Shown here in pieces: positions 1 to 64,000 of a DNA stretch of 64,000 nucleotides. How positions within the stretch are numbered: position 1 is the first letter of the stretch; every line of letters begins with the position of its first letter. This DNA comes from Hypanus sabinus (taxonomy: Eukaryota). The position numbers and the translations under genes are program-made. The notes under the pieces are model-generated. The model saw only the letters and a list, made by a program, of their open reading frames with translations. It was not told the origin of the DNA and searched no databases. The stretch is taken from assembly GCF_030144855.1 (NCBI RefSeq), contig NC_082731.1:23932001-23996000 (forward strand), given 5' to 3'.

Positions 1-1199
1 TCTTCTGCCAATTTCGACTGCATCTCCCTCCGTTATTTCCGTTTGCCGCTTTGTCATTCTATGCACTGGATGTAGATTCATTCTACGGAATCACATAACA
101 CAAGAAAATACTTAATCTTCCAGTTACTCTGCTTCATCATACGGGCATCGATACAGATCTCTAAAGCCTACCACAACGTACACAATTGCATTCCTACATT
201 CTATGAATTAATCAGCCTCCTCTCATTCTGTAACCTTTCGTGAGGTGCTCCTGACCTTCGTTCTATCGCATGTAGGTCTCTCAGTAACAGTAATTCTGCT
301 GATAACTATTCAGGCTAACCGAATGGCGACGCTGTATTGTTATAAAGAAATGGCTTCTCTGTAATATTACTTAATGCTTTGGTAGGTTTCTGTATCTAGA
401 ATATTTGTGTTATGACTGTAGATAAGGGGGTGAACTAACCAAAGGAGAATTGTTATGCTATCTTGCATGTGTAAGCTGAGTTGTGGTTCGCAATCTTTTT
501 CGGGAGGGGAGCAAGGAGGACGGACGTGTGAGGGGCGGCTAGCGGTTCCAGGGCGGCGGATAATGGACGTCAGCGGTTCGAACGATATCTCGGAAGTCTC
601 GGAAGGCCGTTGTGGATGGAACCGGCAGAGTGATCTCAAATACATTAAAATATTACGTGCAAAAACTGATAAACTTCCTGATTTGGCGAATTTAGGTTAT
701 TTGTTTCTCGTAACCCATCACTATGAAATAAGTATAAAGTCGCAATTAGTTACTCATCTTTGGTGTATGGTCTGATATTTGTGTTGCGTGCTTGTACTGG
801 GTGGATGGAGGCATTTCATAGTGTTTACACAGAAGTACTGCGCTATTGGCGGGGCGACGGCAGTTCACCGTAATTGAACGGGGGTAATTTGAGGGCACAG
901 ATGCTACACGTACTTATTAATTTTGGGGGTTTGGGCATTATAGGCAGCGCCAACTGTATTGTTCATCAGCAGCAATAATTTGCAAACTCTCGATGTTCTG
1001 AGAATGTGTACAGTAAAGGTTCATCCAGATGAAAGACACCCAGTGCTTAATTTGCCTCTGACACAGTTTTCAGAAACCAAATTTGACTGGGAACACATTT
1101 AGAGTTAAATGATTTTACTTTAATCATTCGATCGTCTGTTCGATAACACCAAAAATGGGCGAGACATTGTAAGGAATGACAATGTTTGTGGACACTTAC

Positions 1200-1257
1200 C
1201 GGGCTCGACCGTGACCGTTGTCCCCTTTCCTTCATGTGTATAAGTCTTCCAGTCATA
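1200..1257 (-). CDS. NAR-TCR J gene segment (cassette B), intact: YDWKTYTHEGKGTTVTVEP
   Basis: 58 nt (19 codons + 1). It carries the VNAR-type EGxG motif instead of W/FGxG. A phase-1 splice donor G|GTAAGT follows at 1194-1199, and a 23-RSS precedes it. Confidence 0.93.
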
Positions 1258-1296
1258 CACAATGATCCTGTTCTCAGTCTCCCCAATACAACAACT
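1258..1296 (+). other. 23-spacer recombination signal sequence of J (cassette B)
   Basis: CACAATG (1258-1264), a 23-nt spacer, then ACAACAACT (1288-1296). Confidence 0.93.
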
Positions 1297-1643
1297 ACAC
1301 TCACGTGAATATGCTTAGAATCGTCACAATTGGTTTTCCAATGTTTCCAGTGTCGTTAATTCAACAGATAGCATGTTGCATTCCGCATTTTCTGGCAGGT
1401 CAACATGCTCTTTGAAAGAGAAAAAAACAAAAACACAACCAAATTAAGATAAATAGCAGACCGATTCCGAGATGGAAAAAAAACATAGCAAACTTTTCAA
1501 ACAAAAACATTTATGAAACACGGAAATAAGAAATAATCTAATCAGACTACTGAGCAAACATTGTCGGGTTTGTATATTTTGTACAGTACATGCAGAACAC
1601 CTGCTTTAAAATCTTTTGTTTTATTTATACATAAAAAACATTC

Positions 1644-1671
1644 TTAAATTGTTCAGATCTCTTCGACTGTG
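1644..1671 (-). other. 12-spacer RSS on the J-facing side of D (cassette B)
   Basis: Minus strand CACAGTC, 12 nt, ACAATTTAA. The paralog at 62678-62705 reads CACAGTA-12-ACAAATAAA. Confidence 0.8.
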
Positions 1672-1687
1672 TGTACCCAATGAAGTA
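1672..1687 (-). CDS. NAR-TCR D gene segment (cassette B), TACTTCATTGGGTACA
   Basis: 16 nt flanked by two 12-RSS, between V and J. All three frames are open (YFIGY / TSLGT / LHWV). The position is conserved in cassette A. Confidence 0.82.
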
Positions 1688-1715
1688 CACAGTACCTCAG
1701 GTGAATCCCAAATCC
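1688..1715 (+). other. 12-spacer RSS on the V-facing side of D (cassette B)
   Basis: CACAGTA (1688-1694), a 12-nt spacer, then CCCAAATCC (6/9 match to ACAAAAACC). Confidence 0.75.
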
Positions 1716-2035
1716 CCCGAGGAATCGTTGAGAAAAGCGAGCAGGAATTAAATCCCAGCGATGGCGTTATCCGGTACCAAGTGCTCAGGATCGATTCGTC
1801 TGTCGTTGGCAACAAATGTGTGCTGTGTGTTTTTTAAATCTCTGTGGAATTGTATTGGCACAAACTTCAGAGCACCCACGTTCCCGCGACTGTAGAAGTA
1901 TTTTGACTGAACGTGATTAATAAAATATAAAACTGACAGTTAGCTAGACTGTAAGACGGATCGGAAAGAGGGATGTTAACTTTACCGGCATACCCATTTT
2001 GTTCCATCTGATTCAGGAGTAAGCTACAACCGGAG

Positions 2036-2073
2036 TTTTTTTGTACAGCGGGAAACCGAGGTCAATCATTGTG
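2036..2073 (-). other. 22/23-type RSS of the NAR-TCR V (cassette B)
   Basis: Minus strand CACAATG (2073-2067), a 22-nt spacer, then ACAAAAAAA (2044-2036). Confidence 0.9.
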
Positions 2074-2367
2074 CGTAAATCCATTCGTATTCAGCTTGAC
2101 AGTAATAGGTGCCGCTGTCTTCCACTCGAAGATCCCTAATATTCAACGAAAACTGCATGTCGGTTGTTTTAATCGAAGTAGAAAATCTCCCCCCGGCTGT
2201 GATCACTTTCCGTTCGGCCATTGATGGGGTCACCCTGAAGAATCTTCCAGTACTAAAATGGTATGTACCATAAGAACCAGGCTGTAAACGGCAGGTGATG
2301 GTGGCAGTCAGACACTCATTCAAGTTTATAGTACTGGGGTTCTGAGTCACCGACTGACTCAACGAAC
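2074..2367 (-). CDS. NAR-TCR V exon (IgNAR-like V domain), cassette B, open and intact
   Basis: After acceptor AG (2368-2369) it reads SLSQSVTQNPSTINLNECLTATITC...GGRFSTSIKTTDMQFSLNIRDLRVEDSGTYYCQAEYEWIY. Both canonical Cys are present. The 18 residues between the strand-C aromatic and the D-strand F match VNAR spacing (no CDR2). There is an extra Cys in the A'-B loop. Confidence 0.92.
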
Positions 2368-2505
2368 CTAGGATTAAAAGGAGGAAAGTGAGTTGAAATC
2401 AGAGTCGAAACACACAACAGAGTTAAACCAGAAGAATTCTTAAAACGCAGAATGGCTCAGACAGATTTAATGTAAACGTAATGTGGATGTGTGAAATGTA
2501 CTCAC

Positions 2506-2548
2506 GCCGTAAGCAGAACAAAAGTGTCAATAAAAAGAAGACTCCCAT
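2506..2548 (-). CDS. Leader exon of the NAR-TCR V (cassette B): MGVFFLLTLLFCLR
   Basis: ATG at 2548, a hydrophobic 43-nt exon, and phase-1 donor GTGAGT at 2505-2500. It splices in frame to the V exon. Confidence 0.9.
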
Positions 2549-3270: not shown

Positions 3271-3488
3271 NNNNNNNNNNNNNNNNNNNNNNNNNNNNNN
3301 NNNNNNNNNNNNNNNNNNNNNNNNNNNNNNNNNNNNNNNNNNNNNNNNNNNNNNNNNNNNNNNNNNNNNNNNNNNNNNNNNNNNNNNNNNNNNNNNNNNN
3401 NNNNNNNNNNNNNNNNNNNNNNNNNNNNNNNNNNNNNNNNNNNNNNNNNNNNNNNNNNNNNNNNNNNNNNNNNNNNNNNNNNNNNNNN
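3271..3488. other. Assembly gap (N run)
   Basis: Run of n. Confidence 1.
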
Positions 3489-4689: not shown

Positions 4690-6230
4690 GCATTGAATTG
4701 AACTCAATTGACTTCATTTCTTGCATCCTTCATCAACATGATTGAGTATATATCTTTGGCAAACGTTACCGTCTAAATGTGCAATGTGCAATTTATTGTA
4801 AGTTAAAATAATTAGGATATGCAACAGGACAGTCAATATAACATCGAAAACGATTTACTCAGTTTATGGCCTGTTGGAAGAAGCTATCCCTGAGACTGTT
4901 GGTTCTGTCTTTTATGCTGCTATACACTTTGACCGATAGTAGTAGCTGGGACACTTTGTGGCTGGTGTGTCTCGGATGCCCAACCATGCTTCTGGCCCTG
5001 ATCGATCACCTGTATTAGTAAATGTCCAGAATAGTGGGAAGTTCACATCTACAGATGTGCTGGGCTGTCCGCACCACTCACTGCAGAGGTCTGCGATTGA
5101 CGCAGGTACATTTGCCATACCAGACGGTGAAGTTGCTAGTCAGGATTTTCTCCATTCTGCCTTATAAAAATCCTTACTATCTGAGAGCCAACACAAACCT
5201 TGAGAGGACCAAGGCAAACTAGAGGCGCTGTTGTGGCTTTTTCACCACACAGTTGGCATGTGAGGTTGTGCAGTTTGCCTCGGTGTTATTTGAGATTAGT
5301 ACAATTAGTCCAGTGTCGTCATCAAATTTGAATTATCACAGTGGAGCTGTGGGTGGGAACACAAGTAATGGGATACATTGCGTACCAACAGTAGCGGTGT
5401 GGCGTTAGTACACAGCCCAGAAGAGCACCAGCGTTGAGAGTCAGAGAACAAAGGTAGAGAGTCCACTTTTACGATCCGCCGGTAATCTAACAGGATGTCC
5501 AAGGTCCAGCTGAACATGGCAGGGGAAATGTCGAGGTCTATGATGTTTTGTCGAGCTTGGAGGGAACTATATGGTACAGTGCTGAACTAAAGTCCAAGAA
5601 TATCATTTTCGCTTAAGCATTACTCTTTTCAAGATGTGTAAGGACAGTGTATCGAGCTGGGGCTATTGCCTCATCTATCGATCGTTTGAGTTGGTAGGCG
5701 AATTGTTGGCGATCCGGTATGGGAGGTAGGCACGCTGCTCATGTAGTACCTGAGCAGCCTAACGTAGCATTTGATTATTATTGATGTGTCTGACATAAGG
5801 CGCCAGTCGGTCATGCATGTTAACTTGATATTTAAAGATATAAGAATCGTGGATGTTTTGAAACAGGAGCGCACTCTATACTAGGCGAGGTAGAGATTAA
5901 AACTGTACAAAATATTGGACCTGCCAGTGGTGCAGCGCACATCGTCAGTAACCGTGATGAGATGTCTTCCGGCCCCACAGCCTACTGACTGTCCACTGGA
6001 TAGAAACACCTGCGTACTTCGACCTCACTGATGACCAGGTTGCCGGTTACTTCATCTGCATCTCTCCTCAGGGGCTCAGTATTCGCGATGTCGGATCTTG
6101 CGTGTAAATATTTAGCTCGGTGAAGCAGAACCAGAGACTTTCCAAGCTCCACTGGATTTAGTTTTGAAGTCTAAGATATTTCTGCAGACCCTGCAATAAA
6201 TTCCGTGTGCAGTTCGTGGAAAGTTGAGTA
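4690..6230 (-). mobile_element. Degraded Rex1/Babar-like non-LTR retrotransposon (RT region)
   Basis: Minus-strand remnants VISEVEVRRCF...VGPEDISSRLLTMCAAPLAG and VVKKPQQRL*F, with an (ATTCA/ATTGA)-like tail near 4690-4710. Confidence 0.72.
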
Positions 6231-6479
6231 TGGATCTTGTTCATGTATTGGTGTTTCGTTGGCTTCATACCTTTGTGCAAATTGTTGCTCCATTTCTTGA
6301 GATCCTGCTGATTACCGACAAAATAAGCTCTGCGTTGAGTGATAATGCGGCGCTATGGGAACCGATGATCCCTATTGCCAGTTGCCAGGATTCGCCAGAA
6401 CGAGTTTTCAGAATTTCAGATGGGTGTTTGAACTATGAAACGCTGTGGCCCATGTACGTACAAGTGAAAATTATCGTAA

Positions 6480-6790
6480 GGCTCAGTAGGTTCTGTAATG
6501 ATTTGAAGGAATTATGTACTGCGCTAAAAGACGAGACATTCAGAGCTTCGAACTCTAGATTTCACCCTGTGCCTCGTCATCGACAGCCCAGAAGTTCGAA
6601 AGTGACAGGCTTAAACACATGGCTATGGATTTGCTCTAGGATGGAGGACGTAAGATTTTGGACACTCGGATCTCTTCCAATGAAATATTGTCCTGCACAG
6701 AACAGGCGGTTTGCACCTGAATTGGAAAGGGACCAATATCCAATTCAGAAGACTTGCTCGTGCTGTGCTGTAGAGTGACAGAACAAAAAG
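6480..6790 (+). mobile_element. CR1 ORF1 (SGNH esterase) remnant
   Basis: LNTWLWICSRMEDVRF...GLHLNWKGTNI matches the esterase tail of the longer CR1 at ~31760-31900. Confidence 0.65.
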
Positions 6791-8039
6791 TAGACTGAAA
6801 GGGGTTGATAATATTTGAGAGAAAGTCAGCAATCAGAACAATGAGAATCTAGCGCCGGATTTCCAGAGCCGTGTTTATTTCACGGTTGGAGGTGTCGTAA
6901 GAAAGTCGGTTGAGTTCAAAACATAAATGGAAGCAGATTATTATCATTTCGTAGCCATTAGTGTACCTTCGTTGTGGAATTGCTATGTCTTCCGAGGTCG
7001 TTTTACTTTAGACGCGGCTTTACGGCAGCAATTGCAGTTTGGGCATCACTGGTCAGTATTTCTGCTACTGTGAATCTTAAGAGAGTAGAAGATGAACTCT
7101 TCTCCAAAACTCATAACGTTAAAGAGGAAACATTACTTTCATTTTTTTAAGCAAGATTAGTGTATTATTGTTGCCTTATACAAATTTAGAGTCGCCAATT
7201 TCAAACAACATTTGCAAAGGTAATATCACGCACTTCTACCTCCTACCTTCGGAGTCGAGAATTCTAGTACACGATTTTTTCTGCTACCCAATGTGCAACT
7301 CCCTCTCCCAGACCTCTTACAATTCGAGCTCCAGCCACCTCTATTCCAAATACCAGAACCAAGACAGCATTCGTCACCTCTGTCCTAACTTGCCGACTCT
7401 GACGGAGCCGCCGCTAATTGGGAAAACATAACTGCGATTTGTTATAAATATCACTAATTCGCTGTTCAGTTGCGTCACGTTTTAGACCATTAAGGGAGTG
7501 GAAATTGATTAGCACTGTTGAGTTTAAATTGCACCATTGATACATAAACATTTAATGTATTTATACGTTCCAATACTTGAAGGATATCTTCATTCTTGTC
7601 AAAAGTAATTGAGGTATAATGATACCTGACAGGTGAGATTTGTTGCAAGAAATCAATATCGGACTTGGGGACTCCTCCTTGCCGGTGGCAGGGATTATAT
7701 TTGTAAATGGAGAACTTTGTTCTGACGGATCCAGCTACCTTTCATTTCTGTCAATTGTCACTAATACAACAGCTAATCTATATATCGTCTCAGGAGGATA
7801 TCGAACACAATCTCTACTATCCAGAATAGGGTTATTGGTCTCCACTTAATCTTGCCAAACACACAGTTTTGATCAACAACATAATTCCACGCCAGTTGGG
7901 AAACAGGATTCTGGCTTGTTTGAGGATTTTTCAGTTTGCCTCACCTACTCTTTTTCTCTGTAGTCGTTCTGCTACTCTCGATTATGTGTATCTGAAATAG
8001 ACATTAGTGACTGATGATCAGAAATTAGGGAAACTTGTT

Positions 8040-8720
8040 TCCCGTCCAGCCACTGGCTAAAATGCAGCGTGAAGCGCATCCTAGCGCGAAGACATTCCTG
8101 TCATCTTGTTGGATATTTTTTTTTTTCTGGAACGGTAAGGATATGTGAAACAAAAGGTATGGACCTTTCACTTCCATCGCTCATAACGTATGTCATGACT
8201 GCACCTATACCATTTGGACGGACGTGAAAGCAAATATGCATTGGACGTTGTGGATCACAATGATATTTGATTTCAGATTTGTGATTGTTGTGATTCCTTT
8301 TATAGGAGACAACTTGAGAGCATCTTGACTTGCTGTATCACTGTCTGGTACGGGAACGGTACACCCTTTTATCACAGCACTCGGCATAGTGTAATGCGGG
8401 CAGCCCAGCACATCTCTAGTTGTGAACTTCCCATGAGTCAGGATATTTACATGGACAGGTGTGTCTGTGTAAAAACGGCGGGTGGGATCATTGGGGACCA
8501 GAGTCACCATCAAGCACAATCTATTTCAGCTGTTACCATTGTGGAAATGGTACCGCAACATGAAAGGCAGTAGCAACAGGCACCGGGACAGCATCTCCCA
8601 CTAGAACAGCAGACTGATTAACTCACGCAGATTTGACGGTACTGTATATTACATCGACTGTTCTATTTATTATAAAGTACTATGATTGTATATTACACAA
8701 TTGGACTGAGACGTCCACAG
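8040..8720 (-). mobile_element. Rex1-like LINE 3' fragment
   Basis: Similar to 4900-5220 (e.g. 'gggcagcccagcacatct', 'tgacttgctgtatcac'). Confidence 0.65.
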
Positions 8721-10145
8721 AGATTCCTTTTTACTCCTCAGGTATGTGAGAAAAAAAGTAACGAACAGACATTTCAATTTTTGAGGCGTCCGTCTATGTT
8801 CTAATTTTCTGAGCACTCTTGCGTGTGAATGGATACGACCACTTTCGTTTAATGGTTTTTACACTTGGCGAAACGTACTCCGAGAACATGATCTTCTATC
8901 CATTTTAACCCTGTCTTTAGTTTTTGCAGATACTCCCTTTCATCCTCACCTGTTACAAGAATTCATTAAGGTAACAGTGTGTGTTTGAGAAGCATTGCTG
9001 AACCTGCTCGAGTGCCTTTGCAGATGATATTCCAAAATAATAGCCTATGATAGCGATAAAGCCCTTGTGTGTGTTTCCATAGGGAAAGATATTGAACTCT
9101 TCTTCCGTTTCCACCTGTAGGTAGGACTCAGATAATTCCTCTTTGATGAAGCCTTTCACGCGAGAACGTTTTGCAAAGATAACGTATATTCTGAGCAAAG
9201 GGATTGCTCTACGTTCAGAAATGGATTGATGATGTCATTAAGACACAACTGATCCTGACAGATGTATCATTACTGGCTAGAAGCTGATGGACAACTTCAG
9301 GATTCACGTTTTCCACTCAAACTAGGAAAACGTTCCCTCAGCCTTCATGCGATCTCGTTCAGCATGGTTGGTGCAGGGTACGGAGATGCTATGTAAAACT
9401 GGTGTGTGGAATTTTCAAATCAAAAATGAGTCCAATTCAATTTTAATTAATTACAGATTATGTTTGATTTAAACCTTAGAGTTTGTCTCTTGCTAGTTGA
9501 CATGTTAAATCTCAGATCAGCTCATTCCGCTGACACTGTTATCTTTATCAGACTTGCTTATCAATGCCAGGTTGATTGCTGCTTTTTTGAAAACTGCAAT
9601 TTTTTTTTTATATCACTCTCTTTCCTGTGCAGTCTAGTTACTTTCGACTGGCCACATACCTTACCATTTTGCGTTTCTGTAAGTTTCACCTTTAAAATTG
9701 CGTCGGTGAGCCCTATCAAAACGAATCACAATGTCTTCTACAGATACGTTTGATATATTTTTCCAATTTTTTTGAAGTTCAGTTTAATTCCTGACCGCAA
9801 CTGAAATGCGGGTCTGCTGCAGATATCATTGATATCAGACATGTTAACTGTTCTTTTAACAATGCCCGGTGTTTCAGTTACCAAGAGGGTTTTTAAGTGT
9901 TGTCTTGTAAATTTCCACGAACTCCAAGAAACCATCACGCTGTATTAACAGAGACTATCATCTAACTGTCAATGTTCCTTTATTTTTTTTTTCTATTCAA
10001 TCGCGTCGCTGAAATGGATTACACTTTCGTTCGATACCGCTTAAGCAAGCAAAAGAAAATGATCGAACTTGCTTTATATTTTATCCGATTTTCAATTATT
10101 ACGCAAATGCAACTATATTTCCGATATAGACAGACACATCCAGGG

Positions 10146-10353
10146 NNNNNNNNNNNNNNNNNNNNNNNNNNNNNNNNNNNNNNNNNNNNNNNNNNNNNNN
10201 NNNNNNNNNNNNNNNNNNNNNNNNNNNNNNNNNNNNNNNNNNNNNNNNNNNNNNNNNNNNNNNNNNNNNNNNNNNNNNNNNNNNNNNNNNNNNNNNNNNN
10301 NNNNNNNNNNNNNNNNNNNNNNNNNNNNNNNNNNNNNNNNNNNNNNNNNNNNN
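10146..10353. other. Assembly gap (N run)
   Basis: Run of n. Confidence 1.
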
Positions 10354-10839
10354 ATGAACCCGGTAATTACCTTTGTTCCTGACATTTTAAAATCTCGCAG
10401 TCTCTCTCTCTCTTTCACTCTCTGTCTCCCTTCCGAGGAAGAACGTGCAGCGTTATATTGCTTTTCTTACGTGGAATGTTTCTGTGTCCATTTTGAATTT
10501 AAAAGAAAGTGCTGCATATCCAAGAGAAGGTAATTGCTTCGGACTGGTTTTCAAAATACCTCGCCGTATTTCTTAGCAGTTCGATGGCAATACATCCGAA
10601 ATCCGCGGAGAGGATTGACGAGGAAATTAACGCTGCATTACGTGCATGAATATTACTGAGTATCAGGTCGGCAAAAGCAGGCTTGATAAATTATAACGAA
10701 GTCGAGAGACTTATTTCAAAGTCGAGAGATCAATATTGACGGTATTAAGAAAGGCCACGTGAAACAGCCCAATTAGCATAATAAACTTAAGAATGAAATG
10801 CACAATCAAAAAATGAAAGTCCAACGCTAAAACAGAGAA

Positions 10840-11245
10840 GCAAATGTGTTCGGGACAACTTCGTGTCCAGGACTTGAGAGAGGTATTTAAATTTATGTGG
10901 GCGACAGATAGAGTTGACGTGGTTAGGCCTTTTCCATTGAGAGCAGCGGAGATTCAGACAAGAGCACATGAGTTGGGAGTTAGGGGGCAAAAGTCTAAGG
11001 GTAACACGAGGGGGAATTTCTTTACTCAGAGACTGGAAGCTGAGTGTAACGAGCTTCCAGTAGAAGTGGTAGAGGCAGGTTCGGTATTGTCATTTAAAGT
11101 AAAGTTGGATAGGTATATGGACAGGAAAAGTATGGAGGGTTATGCGCTGAGTGCAGACCAATGGGACTAAGTGATACTAAACGTTCGGCACGGACGAAAA
11201 GGGCCGAGCTGGCCTGTTTCCTTGCTGTAATTTTTATACGGTTAT
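10840..11245 (+). mobile_element. 5'-truncated CR1 LINE (same subfamily as 30721-35027)
   Basis: Near-colinear with 34600-35027 (DRVDV...FPLR...KGNTRGNFFTQR...KLDRYMDRK) and with the same 3' UTR. Confidence 0.9.
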
Positions 11246-14200
11246 AAATGTTGAATATGTGACTCTACACATTTTGTTCAACAAGGCCGAATACCAAATG
11301 ACAATGATCGTAGTAATAAACAGACAGACATATAACAGATACAGGGTCACTATGTCTCCTCCACCAGGGATTCCATGATAATAATTACTTCAATTAAATA
11401 CAAAAAGTTGATATGACATCTTCCAATTTCGGAGTTGTCTTTGCGAACCTGAAGCTAAGCAACTACCCACAAAAATCTGGTTCGTCATTGCGCTTGAGTA
11501 ATTTTTTGAAAACTTAATTCGTATTCATCTTCAGTTGCCATGAAGAAAATGAATGCAAAGCGATTATTCTGGTTGATGATTATGGAATGCTTATGAAATA
11601 GCTTCTGCTGCAGTCACCTCTCAGATGTTATTGTATATCCAATTAATAACATGTTGCTTGCTGTTCATTTTCTTGAAGAATAATAGTCCGGCTACTGTAT
11701 AAGGGATGCATCCCATCACTGGCATGTTATATTTCAAATGGAGTTTCAAATTCGTTTATTTTTATCGAACATTTCGACTCTATAATATTCAGCTCAGAAG
11801 AACGTAATTTTGTCGTGTTCCACATAGACAAAAATGTGTAATCGTGCTTTGTTGTTTAACAATGATGTCGGAACTTTTGGAGTTCTCATGTGGATGGAGG
11901 GTGCTTAAACATTGTGCGTAGAATTGAACGTACCTGCAAGGTGAATTGGAATTGAGTGTTGTGCAATCAGCACAGACATATTCAAGATCTGAAGTCACAA
12001 GAACCCTTTGGGGGAAGTGACCACAATATTATCATATTTACCGTGAAATTTGTGAAAGGTGTCTTGTCATTTATCAGTATTAAAGTGGAAAATTGCGTTA
12101 CAGCTCTCTAAGAGAGGCAGTTGGCCAGAATTGATCGGAAAGTAACTCGCGCAGGAATACTAGCATAACAGCACGAGCTCGAAATTCGGAAAACAATTTA
12201 GATTGCTCTGGATATATAGTGATATATTGGACGTGTTTCTGATGTTTCCTATGGTAGGAAAACCTAGAACAAGAAGATACAGCCTAAGAATGGATGGGGC
12301 CCTTTTCAGCCATGAGATGATGGTATTTTTTTGTTATTGGCAGTATTGAATCTGTGAAGCTCATTGCCGCAGACAGCTGTGTAGGCCAAGTATTTATTTA
12401 TATTTATGGTAAAGTTGTACAGATTCTTGATTGATCAGCGGATGAATAGATGTGACGAGAAGGCAGGAAATTTCGGCTGAGACAAAAAGTGGTTCTGCCA
12501 TGATGAAATGGCGTAGTATGCTGATGGTTTATATGAACTAATTCCCTCCTATGTTCAAATGAATTGAAGTATAATAGTCTCTGAAGTACTTAAACAAGAA
12601 AAGTTACACAAAGCTCAACATGCATGTTTCGAATGCGTCATACAGATAAGAGATCTAACTTCTGAAGCAGAATCCAATGTTTATGTACTTTTTTTATTGT
12701 ACGCTTCATTTTATGTGAAGCTATGGTCAGTCAAAGTACATGGATACAGTTTAATTCTTTCTATTTAAACAATTGAAATGTTATATGTAACTTCAATGGA
12801 ACGTGACTGAGAATCAGCGACAGCTGTAAGAGTTAGAAATCCTTGGCGATTTAAATTATATTGTAGGCGGTTAATGTCGGTAAAAATCTAATGCTTGTCT
12901 TGTAATAGGAGAGCGAGACGTGTGATGACAATTAATGACACAAGAATCCAGTAGAGTGTGATGAAATATTTGACGCAAATCAAATATCATATGATTGACT
13001 CGAAGAGAGTTCAAAGCATGGTGGCTTCCTAACAATGTATAATATTGTCTAATTAGGATATATGCGCCTCTTTTGTCATTGACTGGTCCCGTTGTGCCTC
13101 CAGAGAATCAGTAGAAATGATTCTTTTATTGGTATTCATTACTGTCTTATCGTCAAATATGAGGCAGAATGCTGAGTTAATTTAGAATAAAAGACACAGA
13201 AAACGCTGCTAAAACTAAAGTGGTTTTAAATACAGTAGCACTGATGGTTGAACAAAAAATATCAAATGCCAATGCAAAGTGGATTTGTCACTGCTGAAAG
13301 AAACAGCGAACGTATTCAAAAGAAAACATGGAATAAAACTTCAGACATGAGTAAGCATTTATAATCTTCTTGATTTGTTCCGTCTGTATGGAGTAGAGGT
13401 GTAGGTTTGCCTAAAATTGTTCAAGTTATTTGAGATTTTTCAGCACAGTTTGCTCATCCCGCCGACGTACATGACAGTGTAGGAGATCATGAGCTCGTAA
13501 GGTGATAATTGCTTTCACGCAGTTGTTAGAAAATCGGACTAGTGTGCCGCTGTTACGGTAGAGCACCACGGTGATACTCCGAAACCGGTAGATTGTACGA
13601 TGTATGGTCCGCTGCCTTCACTGGAAATCCTTTGGAAATGTATTGATTATTTGCAAAACGCAGTTTCGGGATATATCACTCTTCTAGTAAACATCATTCC
13701 TTTTTGGAACTAATACACTCCGATTTCTCAGTTTCATCATTTGCCGTTTTTATCGATCAAATGGAAAATCTGGAGAAGAGAGATTTGTCTTTAGACGACA
13801 ATTCAATTCGTAACCCCTAAGCTCTGAAGTTGAATCTTAGCAATGTGTTCGAGAGTCACGTGATACTGGCATGCAAAGTAAACATCATTATTCAAGAAGG
13901 GGATGTGTATGGATTACAGGGGGGCCCGAGTTTATGCTTTTCAAATCCTGGGCTATTTCGCTGTTTAAATACGTAATAAATAAATGATAAATCCGAAAAT
14001 GTGTCCTGAATGTAAATGACTAACAGAATAGGTAATAATCTAATATATCAGTTGTTAAAAGGACAAGCCAAATGATAATTTATGAGAAATTACTTAAGTA
14101 CATACACACAGACAAGAGCAGAGAAAAAGTTGAATAAGTTACTCGATTACTGGAATAAGTAGACAGACAGATACGCAGACAAATTGAAGCAAAATGGTCA

Positions 14201-31006: not shown

Positions 31007-31945
31007 TTGGGAGGTATGAGTGTGAGGGCAGCTTGTTGTTCTCGGTGTCGGATGTGGGAGATCCTGGAGTCTCCGAGCCTCCCGGACGTCCACATCTGCG
31101 CCAGGTGCGCCGATCTACAGCTCCTGAGGGACCGAGTTAGGGAACTGGAGCTGCAGCTCGATGACCTTCGCCTGGTCAGGGAGAGTGAGGAGGTGATAGA
31201 GAGGAGATACAGGCAGGTGGTCACTCCGGGACCACGGGAAGCAGATAGGTGGGTTACAGTCAGGAAGGGGAAGAAGCAGGTACTAGAGAGTACCCCCGTG
31301 GTTGTAACCCTTGACAATAAGTACTCATGTTTGAGTACTGTAGGGGAGGGACAGCCTACCTGGTGGGACTGACAGTGGCCGAGCCTCCGGCACAGAGGAC
31401 GGCCCTGTAGCTCAGAAGGGTAGGGTTAGAAGAAAGAGGTCCATAGTAATAGGGGACTCAATAGTCAGGGGCTCAGACAGGCGTTTCTGAGGAGGTGACC
31501 GGGAGTCCCGGATGGTAATTTGCCTCCCTTGTGCCAGGGTTCGGGACGTTTCTGATCGCGTCCAAAATATCCTGAAGCGGGAGGGTGAAGAGCCAGAGGT
31601 CGTGGTACATGTAGGTACCAATGACATAGGAAGGAAAGGGGAAGAGGTCCTGAAACGAGAGTATAGGGAGTTAGGAAGGCTGTTAAGAAGAAGGACCGCA
31701 AAGGTAGTTATCTCGGGATTATTGCCTGTGCCACGCGACAGTGAGAGTAGGAATAGAATTAGGTGGAGGATGAATGCGTGGCGGTGGGATTGGAGCAGGG
31801 GGCAGGGATTCAAGTTTCTGGATCATTGGGACCTCTTCTGGGGCAGTGTGACCTGTTCAAGAAGGACGGGTTGCACTTGAATCGTGGGGGGACCAATATC
31901 CTAGCGGGGAGGTTTGCTAGGGCTACAGGGCGGACTTTAAACTAG
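31007..31945 (+). pseudogene. CR1 ORF1 (CxxC zinc finger, coiled coil, SGNH esterase), disrupted
   Basis: CCSRCRMWE..HICARC..LRDRVRELELQL; VIGDSIVRG; VVVHVGTNDIG; KKDGLHLN. It is split across frames. Confidence 0.88.
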
Positions 31946-32149
31946 TAAGATGGGAGGGCGGGAGACTATTTGAGGAGACTATGGGAGAGGAGGTTAGTTC
32001 ACCAGTGGAGCAAGTAAATAGACAGTGTGTGAGGGAGGAAAGGCAGGTGATGGAGAAGGGATGCGGTCAGCCCGAAGATGTAGGGGAGAAGAAAGAAAAG
32101 GATAATAAATTTGAATGCATTGTTAGGGATGGAAAGAGAGGAGGAGACG

Positions 32150-34946
32150 GAGAGTATCTTAAATGTATCTATTTTAATGCTAGGAGCATTGTAAGAATGG
32201 ATGACCTTAAATCGTGGATTGATACCTGGAATTATGATGTTGTAGCTATTAGTGAAATATGGTTGCAGGAAGGTTGTGTTTGGCAACTAAATATTCCTGG
32301 ATTTAGTTGCTTCAGGTGTGATAGAGTAGGGGGGGCCAGAGGAGGAGGTATTGCATTGCTTGTCCGAGAAAATCTTATGGCGGTGCTTTGGAAGGATAGA
32401 TAAGTGAGCTCCTCTAGGGAGGCCATTTGGGTGGAATTGCAGAATGGGAAAGGTGCAGTAACACTGATAGGAGTGTATTATAGGCCAGCTAATGGGGCGC
32501 GTGAGTTGGAAGAGCAAATGTGTAAGGAGAAAGCAGATATTTGTAGTAAACACAAGGTGGTGATTGTGGGAGATTTTTATTTTCCACACGTAGACTGGGA
32601 AGCTCATTCTGTAAAAGGGCTGGATGGTTTAGAGTTTGTGAAATGTGTGCAGTATAGTTTTTTGCAACAATACATAGAATTACCGACTAGAGATGGGGCA
32701 GTGTTGGATCTCCTGTGAGGGAATGCGATAGGTCAGCTGACAGATGTATGTGTTGGGGAGCATTTCGGGTCCAGTGATCACAATAGCGTTAGCTTCAATA
32801 TAATTATGGGGAAGGACAGGACTGGACCTAGAGTTTGATTGGAGAAAGGCTAATTTTGAGGGGATGCGAAGGGATTTAGAGAGAGTGGATTGGGTCAAGT
32901 TGTTTTATGGGAAGGATGTAATAGAGAAATGGAGGTCATTTAAGGGTGAAATTATGAGGGTGCAGAATCTTTATGTTCCTGTTAGGGTGAAAGGAAAGTT
33001 GAAAGGTTTGAGAGCACCATGGTTTTCAAGGGATATTAGAAATTTGGTTCAGAAAAAGATGGATGTCTACAATAGCTATAGGCAGCATGGAGTAAAGGAA
33101 TTGCTCGAGGAATATAAAGAATGTAAAAGGAATCTTAAGAAAGAGATTAGAAAAGCTAAACGAAGATACGAGGTTGGTTTGGCAAATAAGGTGAAAGTAA
33201 ATCCGGAAGGTTTCTACAGTTATATTAAAAGCAAGAGGATAGTGAGGGATAAAATTGGCCCCTTAGAGAATCAGAGTGGTCAGCTATGTGTGGAACCGAA
33301 GGAGATGGGGGAGATTTTGAATGATTTCTTCTCTTCGGTATTCACTAAGGAGAAGGATATTGAATTGTCTCAGGTGTGGGAAAGAAGTAAGGAAGTTATG
33401 GAACCTATGACAATTAAAGAGGTGGAGGTACTGGCGTTTTTAAGAAATTTAAAAGTGGATAAATCTCCGGGTCCTGACAGGATATTACCCAGGACCTTGA
33501 GGGAAGTTTGTGTAGAAATAGCAGGAGCTCTGACGGAGATTTTTAATATGTCATTAGATTGTGCCGGAGGATTGGCGTATTGCTCATGTGGTTCCATTGT
33601 TTAAAAAGGGTTCTAGAACGAAGCCTAGCAATTATAGACCTGTCAGTTTTACATCAGTGGTGCGTAAATTAATGGAAAGTATACTTAGAGATAGTATTTA
33701 TAATTATCTGGATAGACGAAATCTGATTAGAAGTAGCCAGCATGGATTTGTGCGTGGAAGGTCATGTTTGACAAACCTTATTGAATTTTTTGAAGAAGTT
33801 ACTAGGAATGTTGACGAGGGTAAGGCAGTGGATGTAGTCCATATGGACTTCAGCAAAGCCTTTGACAAAGTTCCACATGGAAGGTTAGTTAAGAAGGTTC
33901 AGTCGTTAGGTATTAATGCTGGAGTAATAAAATGGATTCAACAGTGGCTAGATAGGAGATGCCAGTGAGTAGTGGTGGATAATTGTTTATTGGGGTGGAG
34001 GCCGGTGGCTATCGGGGTGCCTCAGGGATCTGTTTTGGGCCCAATGTTGTTTGTAATATACATAAATGATCTGGATAATGGGGTGGTCAATTGGATTAGT
34101 AAGTATGCCGATGATACTAAGGTAGGAGGTTTTGTGGATAATGAGGTAGATTTTCAGAGCTTGCAGGGAGATTTATGCCGGTTAGAAGAATGGGCTGAAC
34201 GTTGGCAGATGGAGTTTAATGCTGAGAAGTGTGAGGTTCTACAGTTTGACAGGAATAATCCAAATAGAACATACAGAGTAAATGTTAGGGCATTGAGGAA
34301 TGCAGAGGGACAGAGAGATCTAGGAATAACTGTGCATAGTTCCCTGAAAGTGGAGTATCATGTAGATAGGGTGGTGAAGAGGGCTTTTGGAACGCTGGCC
34401 TTTATAAATCAAAGCATTGAGTGCAGAAGTTGGGATGTAATGCTAAAGTGGTACAAGGCATTGGTAAGGCCAAATTTGGAATATTGTGTGCAGTTCTGGT
34501 CACCGAATTATACGAAAGATATCAATAAATTAGAGAGAGTGCAGATACGATTTACTAGGATGTTACCTGGGTTTCAGCAATTAAGTTACAGAGAAAGGTT
34601 GAACAAGTTATGTCTCTATTCATTGGAGAGCAGAATGTTGAGGGGGGATTTGATCGAGGTATTTAAAATTTTGAGAGGGATAGATAGAGTTGACGTGAAC
34701 AGGCTGTTTCCATTGAGAGTAGGGGAGATTCAAACTAGAGGACATAATTTGAGATTTAGGGGGCAGAAGTTTAAGGGAAACACGAGGGGGTATTTCTTTA
34801 CCCAAAGAGTGATAGCTGTGTGGAATGAGCTTCCTGTAGAAGTAGTAGAGGCCAGTTCAGTTGTGCCATTTAAGGGAAAATTGGATAGATATATGGACAG
34901 GAAAGGAGTGGAGGGTTATGGGCTGAGTGCGGGTAGGTGGGACTAG
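32150..34946 (+). pseudogene. CR1 ORF2 (APE endonuclease + reverse transcriptase), disrupted
   Basis: CIYFNARSI, YDVVAISE, GVYYRP, VIVGDF, NYRPVS, QHGF, DFSKAFDKVPH, GVPQGSVLGP, YADD. Stops at ~32401, ~32716 and ~33966, plus frameshifts. Confidence 0.92.
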
Positions 34947-35093
34947 GAGAGATTAAGGGTTCGGCACGGACTAGGAGGGCCAAGATGGCCTGTTTCCGTG
35001 TTGTGATTGTTATATGGTTATATGGTTAATAACCACGTTACAGTCTTACAAACTGCAAAATTAATATGCTATGGTGCATCGCACCCCAGGTGA

Positions 35094-35265: not shown

Positions 35266-35572
35266 GTTGTCATTGCGCAGAGATACAAGGCAGAGTCAGA
35301 GACAAGGACACCGGAGATGTCTAAATGTAACGTCTTATTTGTTCTCTGATAAACAGCCGAAAAGCGCTTTGAAGCTTGTGCTGACTGTTCTATGGAGCCG
35401 CTGCTGCAAATCCTCAGAATATATCTCGAAGCTTCTGCGGGAGATTGGTAATACCACAAAGCATTGTTACCATCATAAGCATCAGGGTAACTGCAGGACA
35501 GTGTTAAATTTCGTCCTTCTTCAACCATTAACACACGCGGATACTGGGACATTGCATCAACAACAAAGGCTC
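35266..35572 (-). CDS. T-cell receptor V alpha/delta exon, open and apparently functional
   Basis: After CTGCAG acceptor: AFVVDAMSQYPRVLMVEEGRNLTLSCSY...LWYYQSP...RFSAVYQRTNKTLHLDISGVLVSDSALYLCAMT. Cys23, Trp41 and Cys104 are present, with a consensus RSS. Confidence 0.93.
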
Positions 35573-35648
35573 CTGCAGCAGATCAAAAATACAATTATTC
35601 ATCTGCTTGTGAATCAATCCCAAAACCAGCGTTGAAACAGAGACTCAC

Positions 35649-35739
35649 CGGGAACAGCCAGGATAATTATTAGCAACGACAAAACACAGAATATTATTAC
35701 AGAATTAGTAGCAGAGCGTAATGTGGAGAAATGCATCAT
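35649..35739 (-). CDS. Leader exon of the TCR V alpha/delta: MMHFSTLRSATNSVIIFCVLSLLIIILAVP
   Basis: 91-nt open exon with a hydrophobic core, phase-1 donor G|GTGAGT (35648-35643) and a 76-nt intron; in frame with V. The start ATG is uncertain. Confidence 0.85.
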
Positions 35740-50034: not shown

Positions 50035-52150
50035 CCATATAATCATTTAACAATTACAGCACGGAAACAGGCCATCTCTGCCCTCCTAATCTGTGGCGAA
50101 CTCTTACTGTCACCTGGTCCCACTGGCCCGCACTCAGCCCATAATCCTCCATTCCTTTCAAGTCCATATAACTATCCAGTTTTAACTTAAATGTCAGTAC
50201 CGAACCTGCCTCTACCACCTCTACTGGAAGCTCGTTCGACACAGCCATCACTCCCTGAGTAAAGGAATTACTCCTCGAGTTACCCTTAAACTTTTGCCCC
50301 GTAACTCTCAATTCCTGTCTTCCTGTTTGGATTTTCCCTTCTCTCAATGTAAAAAGCCTATCCACGTCAACTTTATATATCCCGCTTATATATTTATATA
50401 CATCTAGTACTGAAACCCGGGTAACATTCTAGTAAATCTTCTCTGTACTCTAACTATTTCGTTGACATCTTTCCTACAATTCGGTGACCCAAACTGTAAA
50501 CAATACTCCAAATTCGGCGTTACCAAAGCTTTGTACATTTTTATATTATATCCCAACTACTAGACTCAATACTGTGATTTATAAAGGCCAGCATACCAAA
50601 ACATTTTTTAACAAACCTTTCCAAATGAGATTCCACCTTCAGGGAACTATGCTCCATTATTCCTAGATCAATCTGATCTACTGCATTCCTCAATGCCCTA
50701 CTATTTACCATGTATGTCCCATTTGGATTATTCCTTCTAAAATGTAGCTGCTCACACTTATCAGCATTAAACTCCATTTGCCATCATTCTTGTAACTGGC
50801 CTAAATCTCTTTGCAAGCTTTGAAAAACTACTTCATTATCCACAAATTCACCTGCGTTAGTATCATCTGCAAACGTACTAATCCAAATTACCACCCCATC
50901 ATCCAGATCATCAACGTATATGAAAAACAACTTTGGACACAGTACAGATCCCTGAAGCATACCACGAGTCACCGGCCTCCAACCTGACAAACAGTTATCC
51001 ACCACTACTCTCTGGTATCTCCCATCCAGCCGCTGTTGATTCCTTTTTACTACTTCAATATTAATACCCAACGATTGAACCTTCCTAACTAACCTTCGGT
51101 GTGGAATCTTGTCAAAGGCCTTACTGAATTACATATAGACATCATCCACTGCTTTACACTCGACAACATTCCTCTTCACCTCTTCAAAAAATTCAATAAT
51201 ATTTTTCAAACTTGATCGTCCACGCACAATTCTTTGCTGTCTGTTCTAATCAGACTCTGTCTATACAGATAATTATACATAACATCTCTAAGAAAACTTT
51301 CCATTAATTTACGCACCACTGACGTCAATCCGATATGGCTCTAATTTTCCCGTTTAATCTTAGAACACTTTTTAAACAAATAAATTACATCAGCAATACG
51401 CCTGTCCTGTGAACTATCCTCATTTCAATTGACAATTGAATTATTTCTGTCAGAGCCACTGCTATTTCTACTTTAACTTCCCTCAATGTACTAGTGAATA
51501 TCCAGTCAGGACTCAGAGATGCATCTACTTTTATATTCCTAAAAAGGCCAGTACTTCGTCCTTTTTAATCGTAATCGTTTCCGTAACTTCCCTACTTGTT
51601 TCCCTCACTTTACACGATTCAATATCCTGCTCCTTAGTGAATACCGACGAAAAGAAATTGTTCCAAATTCCTCCCATCTCTTTCGGCTGCACACATAGCT
51701 GTCCACTCTGATTCCCTAAGGGACCAATTTTGTCTGTCACTATAGATTTGCTTTTAATATAACTGCAGAATCACGTCGGATTTATTTTCACCTTAACTGC
51801 CAAAACAACCCAGTATGTTTTTTTAGCTTTTCTAATTTCATCTGAAGATTCTTCTTACATTCTTTATATTCCTCGAGAACCTCATTTACCCTTGATGCCT
51901 ATATTTATTCTAGATATCTCTCTTTTTCCTAACCAAGTTTCTAAGATCCCTTGACAACCATGGCTTTCTCAAACGTTTAACCTGTTCTTTCAACTTAAAA
52001 GGAACATAAAGCTTCTGTACCCTCAAAGTGTCAGCTACAAATGACGTCCAGTTCACTATTACCTCCTTCCCATAAAACAAATTGTCCCAAACAACTCCTT
52101 TTAAATCCTGCCGCAACTCCTAAAAGTTGGCCGTTCTCAAATCAAAAATT
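50035..52150 (-). mobile_element. Degraded CR1 LINE (ORF2 fragments, same subfamily as 30721-35027)
   Basis: DRLFTLREGKIQTG, MEFNADKCE, QGSVLCPKLF..FADD and DKIGPLGNQSGQLCVQPKEMG, with internal deletions. Confidence 0.88.
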
Positions 52151-59896: not shown

Positions 59897-59935
59897 TGTT
59901 TTTGTATTGTTCTATCGCTGTTCAGCAGCACTGTG
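59897..59935 (-). other. Second (downstream) near-consensus 23-RSS behind the supporting V
   Basis: Minus strand CACAGTG (59935-59929), 23 nt, ACAAAAACA (59905-59897). Confidence 0.85.
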
Positions 59936-59957
59936 TGGTTGCAAAAAGAGGCTCAGT

Positions 59958-59996
59958 GCTTCTTGTGGAGCGCTGTCAATTTGCGGCATCACAGTG
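59958..59996 (-). other. 23-spacer RSS of the supporting TCR delta V
   Basis: Minus strand CACTGTG (59996-59990), 23 nt, ACAAGAAGC (59966-59958), directly after YYCAISPFP. Confidence 0.88.
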
Positions 59997-60299
59997 CTGG
60001 GAACGGACTAATTGCGCAGTAATACAATGCAGCGTCGCTCAGTTGCAGTTTTGAGATCGTCAGCTGGCTGATTTTCTTATCAGGATCTAGAACAGCAGTA
60101 ATTCGTTCACCGGCGATTTTTATTTCGTCTTGTTCTCCAAAGGTTTGTCTCTGGACCAGATGTATGTGTGGCTGTACTCGAAGCTGCCGATACCAGTGTA
60201 ACGTTTTGAAACAATGCACATTATAATTACATTTTAATCTGATGTTGCCAGCAAGAGTAGTTTGTAGTTCAGGTATCTGAGACGGTGGAGAAATGGATT
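59997..60299 (-). CDS. Leaderless supporting TCR delta V of NAR-TCR (cassette A), intact
   Basis: After acceptor CCTACAG (60300-60301) it reads (E)SISPPSQIPELQTTLAGNIRLKCNYNVHCFKTLHWYRQ...SQLTISKLQLSDAALYYCAISPFP. It has an extra Cys in CDR1, no leader exon was found upstream, and it is phase-1 compatible with the NAR J donor 1.94 kb upstream. Confidence 0.9.
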
Positions 60300-62236
60300 C
60301 TGTAGGAATGCAAAGGATGATTATTGGTGTTTAACATGTCTATCAGAAAAATTGTCCCAAATAAGGGAAAGAAAATTTGCTTTTACGCAAGCACATGTCA
60401 ATTAGAGTGTATCTCAATTGAAACATTTATTGTCACTTCCGTTTACTGTAAGAAATTGTTGCAGTGTAAATATCAGGAGCACATGACATTTGGAGGACGC
60501 ATTGCTGTTATGAAAATATTTGATACTGTGTGAATCAATGTGAAAGAAAGAAACTGAATTCATGGAGAAGTTCTGTCGAGCCATCAAAGTCATAATGGGT
60601 GGATCTCACTTTTTTCAGTTCTATGCTGATTTTTTTCTTCATAGACTTTCCCCATTATGGATTGTAGCCTGTGCCCCATCTTGGACTGTAGTTTGGCATC
60701 ACATTTTTGAGGTTGAAGCGTGCAGACTGGTCAGTTTTTTTTTTAAGCAGCTGAAGACTGATCCGAATTTTCAAGCGGATTTTAGCAGATGTCCATATAA
60801 ATGTTCGGATCCCGAAACATTACTTATTCTTTTTATGCAGTTGGTATGACATTTCCGGTCCTATCTGAGAAATAATTGGAGAAAACTATGTTCATTGTTT
60901 CCTGCATGTCGCTGGCTCATATGTGTTATTTCTGCATGTGGTTTATGACTTAAGCTTATGACAACATTTCCCACGTGCATGACGGTGGTCGGTTGTATTC
61001 ATTCTACGAAGATTGGATAGGCATTTCAAACTTATTACTGGCTGCCAATTTCGTCTGCATCTCCCTCCGTTAATTATGTTTGCCACTTTGTCTTTCTATG
61101 CACTGGGTGTAGATTCATTCTCAGGAATCACATAACACAAGAAAGAACTTAACCTTACAATTACTCTACTTCATCATACGGGCCTCGGTACAGCTCTCTA
61201 AAGCCTACCACAACGTAGATAATTGCATTCCTGCATTCTATGAATTAGTCAGCCTCCCCTCTTTCTGTATCCTTTCGTGCAGGTGCTCCTGATCTTCGTT
61301 CTATCGTATGCAGGTCTCTCAGTAACAGTAACTGTGGTGATGACTATTCAGGCTAACCGAATTGCGACTCTGTATTGTTATAATGAAATGGCTTCTCTGT
61401 AATATTATTTAATGCTTTGGTAGTTTTTTTTTGTGTCTGGATTATTTGGGTTATGACTGCAGATAAGGGGGTGAACTAACCAAAGCAGAATTGTTATGCT
61501 ATCTTGTATGTGTAACCTGAGTTGCAGTTCGCAGTCTGTTTCGGGAGGCGAGCGAGAGGACGGATGTGTGAGGGGCGCCTAGCGGTTCCAGGGCGGCAGA
61601 TAATGGAGGACAGCGGTTTGGACGTTGGACGAAGTCTCGGAAGGCCGTTGTGGATGGATCCGGCAGCGTGAGCTCAAATGCCTTAAAATATTACGTGCAA
61701 AAACTGATAAATTTCCTGATTTGGCGAATTTCGTTTAACTGTTTCTCGTAACCCATCACTAAGAAATTACTATAAAGTCACAATTATTTAAACAGCTTTG
61801 GTGTATGGTCTGATATTTGTGTTGCGAGATTGTACTGGGTGGATGGAGGCATTACATAGTGTTTACACAGTAGTATTGCACTATTGGCGGGGCGACGACA
61901 GTTAACCCTAGTTGAACGGGGGTAAATTGGGGGCACAGATGCTACACGTACTTATTAATTTTGGGGTTTGGGCATTATAGGCAGCGCCAACTGTATTGTT
62001 CATCAGCAGCAATAATTTGCAACCTCTCGATGTTCTGAGAATGTCTACAGTAAAGGTTCATCCAGATAAAAGACACACTGTGCTTAAGTCGCCTCTGACA
62101 CACTTTGCAGAAACCAAATTTGACTGGGGACACATTTAGAGTTAAATAATTTTACTTTAATCATTCGATCGTCTTTTCGATAACACCAAAAATGGGCGAG
62201 ACATTATAAGTAATGACAATGTTTGTGAACACTTAC

Positions 62237-62294
62237 CGGGCTCAACCGTGACCGTTGTCCACTTTCCTTCATGTGTATAAGTCCTCCACGCATA
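62237..62294 (-). CDS. NAR-TCR J gene segment (cassette A): YAWRTYTHEGKWTTVTVEP, GxG motif altered
   Basis: Open 58 nt with donor G|GTAAGT (62231-62236). GGG>TGG changes EGKG to EGKW. Confidence 0.9.
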
Positions 62295-62333
62295 CACAGT
62301 GATCCTGTTCTTAGTCTTCCCAAGACAACAACT
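62295..62333 (+). other. 23-spacer RSS of J (cassette A)
   Basis: CACAGTG, 23 nt, ACAACAACT. Confidence 0.95.
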
Positions 62334-62677
62334 ACACTCACGTGAATATGCATAGCATCGTCACAATCGGTTTTCCAATGTTTCCAGTGTCGTTAATTGA
62401 ACAGATAGCACGTTGCATTCCACATTTTCTGGTAGGTCAAAATGCTCTTTGAAAGAGGAAAAAAACAGAACACAACCTAATTAAGATAAATTGCAGACCG
62501 ATTCTGAGATGGAACAAAAAACGTAGCAAAGTTGTCAAACAAAAATATTTATGAAATACGGAAATAACAAATAATCTAATCAGACTACTGAGCAAATATT
62601 GTCGGGTTTGTACATTTAGTACAATACATGCAGAGTACCAGCTTTAAAATCCTTTTATATTTATACAAAAAATATTA

Positions 62678-62749
62678 TTTATTTGTTCAGATCTCTTCTA
62701 CTGTGTGTATGCCTTGACTTACACAGTACCTCAAGTGAATATCTAATCT
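62678..62749 (-). CDS. NAR-TCR D segment (62706-62721, TAAGTCAAGGCATACA) with flanking 12-RSS (cassette A)
   Basis: The J-side RSS is CACAGTA-12-ACAAATAAA (62705-62678). The V-side RSS is CACAGTA-12-ATCTAATCT (62722-62749; nonamer degenerate). One frame begins with a stop. Confidence 0.8.
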
Positions 62750-63066
62750 CCCGAGGACCCTATAAGAAAAGAGAGCAGGAATTAAGTCCCAGTGAATGCG
62801 TTATCCGGTACCAAGTGCTCAGGAACGATTCCGTCTGTAGTTGGCGACAAATGTGTGCTGCTTTTTTTTAATTATGTGGAAGTTTATTGGCACAGACCTC
62901 AGAGCACCCGCGCTCCCGCAACTGTAGGAAGATTATGACTGAACGTCATTAATAAAAAATAAAACTGACTGCTAGCTAGACTGTAAGACGGTTCGGCAAG
63001 AGGGATGTTAACTTTAACGGCATACCCATTTTGATCCATCTGATTCAACAAGAAGCTACAACGGAA

Positions 63067-63104
63067 GTTTTTTGTACAGCGGGAAGGCGATGTCAATCAT
63101 TGTG
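63067..63104 (-). other. 22/23-type RSS of the NAR-TCR V (cassette A)
   Basis: Minus strand CACAATG, 22 nt, ACAAAAAAC. Confidence 0.92.
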
Positions 63105-63374
63105 AGAGACGCCATTGGTATTCAGCTTCCACTGGAAGATTCCTAATATTCAACGAAAACTGCATGTCGGTTGTTTTAATCGAAGTAGGAATTCTCCCCC
63201 CGGCTGTGATCACTTTCCGTTCAGCCATTGATGGGGTCTGCATGAAGAATTTTCCAGTAATAATATCATATTCACCTGAATAACCAGGCTGTGAACGGCA
63301 GGTAATGGTGGCAGTCTGACACTCATTCAAGTTTATAGTACTGTGGGTCTGAGTCACCGACTGACTCAACGAAC
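63105..63374 (-). pseudogene. NAR-TCR V exon (cassette A), in-frame 24-nt deletion removing DSGTYYCQ
   Basis: It reads ...NIRNLPVE^AEYQWRL versus ...NIRDLRVEDSGTYYCQAEYEWIY in cassette B, so the second canonical Cys is lost. Confidence 0.9.
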
Positions 63375-63512
63375 CTAGAATTAGAAGGAGGAAAGTGAGT
63401 TCAAATCAGAGACGAAGCACACAACACAGTTAAACGAGATGAATTCTTCAAACGCAGAATGACTCAGACTGATTTAATGTAAACGTAATGTTGATGCGTG
63501 AAATGTACTCAC

Positions 63513-63555
63513 GCCGTAAGCAGAACAAAAGTGTCAATAAAAAGAAGACTCCCAT
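63513..63555 (-). CDS. Leader exon of the NAR-TCR V (cassette A): MGVFFLLTLLFCLR
   Basis: Identical (43/43) to 2506-2548, with donor GTGAGT. Confidence 0.9.
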
Positions 63556-64000
63556 CGTCAAACGGGAAGATTTTTGAAATGACGAGGACATGGACAATAA
63601 AGCCAGCACACTAATGGCAGAATTTGCTTCAGATTTGGACAGTGATCTTTCAACGACAGGTTTATTGAAGGACAGTTGGTGGTTCTAATTTGTGTATTTG
63701 TTCAGGGTGAGGAAACTCCTCCCATAACCGCCTGATGTTCAACATGTGTGACGGAGATGGACTATCAGTGGACAAGTCCTTTTCATTCGGAAGTAAACGG
63801 ACGACCTTTCAAAAAATATGTTATTTTCTACTATTTTATGATTTTGAGAACCGTGCCCCAGACCTCAAGAGAATATTTCAATATTTAGACCAGCTCCATT
63901 TAGACGGAGCGGGCGACATAGTAGAGAGAAACGGAGAGGGACTCCAAGTGAGGTTCGGCCGGGTAAGTTCCTTTAAAAGTAGAACGTTTCAATACTTGAG

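Follow-up and report, generated by a model that had tools for sequence, protein, structure and literature searches.

NAR-TCRs are known from sharks, rays and chimaeras. The nurse shark receptor was described by Criscitiello, Saltis and Flajnik (2006, PNAS 103:5036; as recounted in PMC1845163, PMC5931798 and PMC12227049), and for a stingray, NARTCR V segments have been located in a chromosome assembly (PMC12227049). Three traits set the NAR-TcR V apart from the V of IgNAR: a typical leader, an a-b loop cysteine and the lack of the tryptophan of the 'WYRK' motif (Venkatesh et al., PMC1845163). In IgNAR clusters the D segments number three, except in type III, which has two (PMC4279169, PMC3149040). 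Here, we examine a stretch of 64,000 nt of Hypanus sabinus DNA (NC_082731.1, positions 23,932,001-23,996,000, forward strand), referred to below as the window, whose numbering is used for all positions. It carries two paralogous cassettes, A and B, and we consider that cassette B is probably the N-terminal half of a NAR-TCR unit in germline, unrearranged form, located within the V region of a TCR alpha/delta-type locus in a ray.

Cassette B extends over 1349 nt on the minus strand, from the ATG of its leader to the final base of its J. A preliminary description had placed a leader, a V followed by a signal with a 22-nt spacer, a D flanked by two 12-spacer signals, and a J with a 23-spacer signal and a splice donor within 1.35 kb. 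This arrangement matches the minus strand base for base, and direct reading bore out every coordinate and spacer length, as well as the open frames and the splice sites, without exception. The parts of cassette B are the following:

2506-2548, minus strand: leader exon, 43 nt, phase 1, ATG at 2548-2546 (direct reading)
2368-2505, minus strand: leader intron, 138 nt, donor GTGAGT at 2505, polypyrimidine tract, acceptor AG at 2369-2368
2074-2367, minus strand: NAR-type V exon, open, with Cys23 and YYC present (direct reading)
2036-2073, minus strand: V recombination signal, directly adjoining the V, CACAATG / 22-nt spacer / ACAAAAAAA
1688-1715, minus strand: D 5' signal, nonamer GGATTTGGG / 12 nt / heptamer TACTGTG
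1672-1687, minus strand: single D, 16 nt, TACTTCATTGGGTACA, all three frames open (direct reading)
1644-1671, minus strand: D 3' signal, CACAGTC / 12 nt / ACAATTTAA, nonamer 4/9
1258-1296, minus strand: J signal, nonamer AGTTGTTGT / 23 nt / heptamer CATTGTG
1200-1257, minus strand: J, YDWKTYTHEGKGTTVTVEP plus 1 nt, phase 1, with a G-x-G-T-x-V-T-V motif (direct reading)
1194-1199, minus strand: J splice donor, GTAAGT (direct reading)
1-1193, minus strand: initial 1.2 kb of a presumed intron between the J and a supporting V, recognized by homology to the corresponding intron of cassette A

The leader exon encodes a hydrophobic signal peptide, MGVFFLLTLLFCLR, plus one nucleotide, and its GT...AG intron splits the leader in phase with the V exon. 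The latter translates as (R)SLSQSVTQNPSTINLNECLTATITCRLQPGSYGTYHFSTGRFFRVTPSMAERKVITAGGRFSTSIKTTDMQFSLNIRDLRVEDSGTYYCQAEYEWIY, with QPGSYGTYHFSTG as its CDR1. Given the 22-nt spacer of the V signal, the 12/12 arrangement of the D and the 23-nt spacer of the J signal, the 12/23 rule is obeyed. Cassette B is thereby confirmed as an intact, unrearranged germline V-D-J unit. Past Cys104, the germline V continues for eight codons (2074-2097) that read QAEYEWIY, a stretch that constitutes a long germline share of CDR3; its AEY.W motif also occurs in cassette A.

Candidate recombination signals were weighed against shuffled sequence, with a nonamer threshold of 6/9 and with hits counted on either strand and at more than one spacer length for each heptamer. 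A consensus scan of the window returned 17 signal-like matches, compared with a mean of 4.9 (range 1-10) after shuffling, and the majority of the 17 fall exactly at the V, D and J borders of the two cassettes or at the borders of other V exons. The D 3' signal of cassette B, with its nonamer of 4/9, lies under the threshold of the scan; its counterpart in cassette A scores 6/9. Between V and J, a single element with opposed heptamers occurs in cassette B, and likewise in cassette A. The layout of cassette B is no assembly artefact, because contigs in germline form from four public runs span both the V/signal and the signal/J borders with 95-99% identity. Runs of N in the window are confined to 3271-3488 and three other places.

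What kind of V domain does cassette B encode? Each exon was searched separately. The V exon matches the Pfam V-set family (E 9.7e-09), and its best single-domain matches in the PDB are VNARs (2ywz, 1.4e-12; 1ver, 2.5e-12), with which it aligns with only one gap, of three residues, in CDR1. The top ESM Atlas cluster is annotated as 'shark V-NAR antibody' (score 0.93). When the V exon was compared with proteins by a word-based search, no match came up in the band of 53-170 aa, which excludes full-length NAR-TCR chains and makes the result uninformative on relatives, and an AlphaFold2 model of the V exon alone, built without an alignment, had a mean pLDDT of 41.8, too poor for a reading of the fold.

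The proximity to solved IgNAR V domains would also be expected if cassette B belonged to an IgNAR heavy-chain cluster, with its J spliced to IgNAR constant exons further left, and the window, which holds neither type of constant exon, is compatible with such an arrangement. Nevertheless, we regard this as extremely unlikely, first of all on account of the V itself. The cysteine of its a-b loop ('NLNEC') aligns to the G of 'TGES' in 2ywz, seven residues ahead of Cys23, and the tryptophan of WYRK is absent, FFRV being aligned to WYRT of 2ywz with a phenylalanine in its place; both are traits of NAR-TcR, not of IgNAR (PMC1845163). With its typical leader, the predicted V domain carries all three of the listed NAR-TcR hallmarks. 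Second, the number of D segments is one, against three in IgNAR or two in type III (PMC4279169, PMC3149040). A third argument comes from the DNA behind the J, for which the paralogous cassette A provides a template. Cassette A is 88% identical to cassette B and comprises the following parts:

59897-63555, minus strand: cassette A as a whole
63555, minus strand: ATG of the leader
63374-63105, minus strand: NAR V exon
62721-62706, minus strand: D
62294-62237, minus strand: J, with a phase-1 end and a GT donor
60299-59997, minus strand: leaderless supporting V, followed by two tandem 23-spacer signals

Aligned over 5-2883 and 61042-63890, the two cassettes share 88% identity, with their parts in the same order. 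Their leader exons are identical (43/43), their leader introns are 90.6% identical and the spacer of the V signal is 22 nt in both. The D cores (1672-1687 and 62706-62721) are 62% identical, and the signals that flank them 82-89%. The two cassettes also share, without a mismatch, a block of 28 nt at 2611-2638 that lies some 65-90 nt upstream of the ATG of the leader, with flanks at 84%. The block includes AAGCAAAT (2622-2615), which agrees with the Ig octamer at 7/8 positions, a match that is not compelling; the exact octamer, ATGCAAAT, was not found near any leader in the window.

The tip unit of cassette A (63555-62235) is a decayed copy, and of the two tip units in the window that of cassette B is the intact one. 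The V of cassette A has suffered a 24-nt in-frame deletion between 63129 and 63128 (corresponding to 2121-2098 in cassette B), which takes out EDSGTYYC, including Cys104, the second canonical cysteine. Furthermore, its J reads EGKW where that of cassette B reads EGKG, and one frame of its D opens with a stop (TAA). Copies in the array thus do die, as this visible decay of cassette A attests, and cassette B could likewise be a structurally intact front half of a NAR-TCR that is orphaned or unused, be it that the duplication fell short of the supporting V, that this V is defective or that the D-to-J signal is too weak. The nonamer of 4/9 in the D 3' signal of cassette B points in the same direction. 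On the other side, all frames and splice sites of cassette B are intact, as are the CAC/GTG cores of its heptamers, and the leader exon is fully conserved between the two copies. On balance, we judge an orphaned or unused front half to be unlikely.

In cassette A, an acceptor AG at 60301-60300, approximately 1.9 kb past the J, opens the leaderless V in the matching phase 1. This supporting V reads ...LKCNYNVHCFKTLHWYRQ...AALYYCAISPFP and has a cysteine in CDR1 (NVHC). Among solved structures it is closest to TCR alpha chains (about 1e-10), with antibody chains behind, and it is a V of TCR alpha/delta type. Of the two tandem 23-spacer signals behind it (59897-59996), the proximal one reads CACTGTG/23/ACAAGAAGC and the distal one, which is nearer the consensus, CACAGTG/23/ACAAAAACA.

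The 1.2 kb behind the J of cassette B matches the intron between J and supporting V in cassette A at 90.8% identity, and at 94.7% over the first 320 nt. This bears directly on an IgNAR cluster, since the homologous intron in cassette A ends at a V of TCR type and not at a C exon, and the open frames in 1-1199 behind the J of cassette B contain no Pfam domain and no Ig domain. It also bears on an orphaned front half, in whose favor it can be said that the supporting V of cassette B falls outside the window, and against which it counts that the homology continues up to the window edge. As the alignment extends to base 5, the predicted supporting V of cassette B should be found 739-1041 nt left of base 1. 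The preliminary description had estimated by colinearity a distance of about 0.75-1.05 kb, which our recomputed value of 0.74-1.04 kb upholds. Its reading of the cassette as NAR-TCR likewise gains support from the VNAR-like V and its hallmarks, the single 12/12 D, the phase-1 donor of the J and the homology to the intron of cassette A.

A high-copy interspersed repeat occupies about 330-870 of the cassette B intron, with its counterpart at about 61370-61910 in the intron of cassette A. Its summed contig depth reaches 5,000-13,000 in the four public runs, which bear three organism labels, and it has neither an Rfam match nor a Pfam domain. Since the repeat is common to the J-to-V introns of both cassettes, its insertion predates their duplication.

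Between the two cassettes lies a conventional TCR alpha/delta-like V with its own leader (35266-35738, minus strand, ATG at about 35738). It encodes a V-set domain, reads ...SDSALYLCAMTT and is followed by a signal composed of the perfect heptamer CACAGTG, 23 nt and ACAAAAACT, a nonamer with 8/9 matches. The neighboring V exons, namely this one and the supporting V of cassette A, are of TCR alpha/delta type. No constant exon of any kind occurs in the 64-kb window, and for this reason the assignment to delta draws on the types of the neighboring V exons and on the literature. At 31900-35000 (plus strand) lie the endonuclease and reverse-transcriptase domains of a non-LTR retrotransposon that frame changes have broken up, and at 50787-51128 (minus strand) a second reverse-transcriptase fragment. 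Rfam gave no match on the full window.

Intactness is the one positive sign that cassette B may function. Between the V exons of A and B, 24 differences are non-synonymous and 4 synonymous, with a dN/dS of 1.83 that is not significant (Fisher p 0.34). Counted by codon, the differences are 20 non-synonymous and 3 synonymous, and 8 of these 20 fall in the 16 residues of CDR1. Such a ratio, uninformative as to function, fits either diversification or a loosening of constraint on one of the copies, with no purifying selection apparent in the comparison. A dN/dS that is not below 1 is also what an unused copy would be expected to display. A search of public sequencing runs for the cassette B stretch found no RNA run, which again agrees with disuse; the four public runs behave as low-coverage genomic DNA, with contigs that read through from exon into intron and in which neither V-D-J joints nor splice joints were present.

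If cassette B is a NAR-TCR front half, as we favor, its anatomy and the NAR-TcR literature (PMC1845163, PMC5931798, PMC6795676, PMC12227049) suggest how it would be put to use. First, RAG would join D to J (12- to 23-spacer) and then V to DJ (22/23- to 12-spacer), direct joining of V to J being barred because the signals of both have long spacers. Second, transcription would start upstream of the leader, which would be spliced onto the rearranged VDJ exon, and the phase-1 donor of the J would be spliced to the phase-1 acceptor of the leaderless supporting V-delta located left of base 1. Finally, this supporting V would be separately rearranged to a TCR-delta D and J and spliced to C-delta. If expressed, the product would be a delta chain of three domains in a gamma/delta receptor; its antibody-like tip domain would be unpaired and probably tied by a disulfide between the a-b loop's cysteine and the CDR1 cysteine of the supporting V.

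A wider reading would see in the array of cassettes a library of tip domains encoded in the germline, given that most differences between copies are substitutions that change an amino acid. As the D is flanked on either side by a 12-spacer signal, an upstream TCR V with a 23-spacer signal might even join to it, giving rise to chimeric chains with two V domains. We would assign little likelihood to this scenario. More soberly, cassette B adds one well-formed germline copy to an already known family, and opens no new question. Its practical value lies in annotation: the tip unit of cassette B is intact, and that of cassette A is not.

Among known systems, the TCR-mu of marsupials and monotremes is similar in that the antibody-like V at the tip of its three-domain chain is unpaired and sits on a supporting V (PMC3457774). 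It is convergent, however, relies on V domains of the VH type and has a constant gene of its own; it is not known from cartilaginous fish. Elasmobranch IgNAR shares with cassette B the V fold, the framework GGRF...FSL.I.DLRVEDSGTY.C and a short C'-C'' region, but has three D segments and keeps the tryptophan of WYRK. The J of IgNAR is spliced to C-NAR exons; in the 1.2 kb behind the J of cassette B, no Ig domain was found. Judged by the listed hallmarks, the V of the elephant shark NAR-TcR (Venkatesh et al. 2007, PMC1845163), like that of cassette B, has a leader and a cysteine in the a-b loop and lacks the tryptophan of WYRK; its V-delta partners are leaderless with a cysteine in CDR1 (PMC1845163), as is the supporting V of cassette A.

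The nurse shark NAR-TcR, in the account given of it by later papers, is likewise close. There, two independent V(D)J rearrangements lead to a three-domain delta chain, as is proposed for cassette B. In the nurse shark, the tip unit is followed downstream by a V-delta that has no leader and carries a cysteine in CDR1, the position in which a supporting V is predicted for cassette B. As far as that account goes, in both systems the V resembles that of IgNAR and has a leader and rearranging segments of its own, and cassette B stands apart by belonging to a ray, by the 22-nt spacer of its V signal and by the eight germline codons past Cys104.
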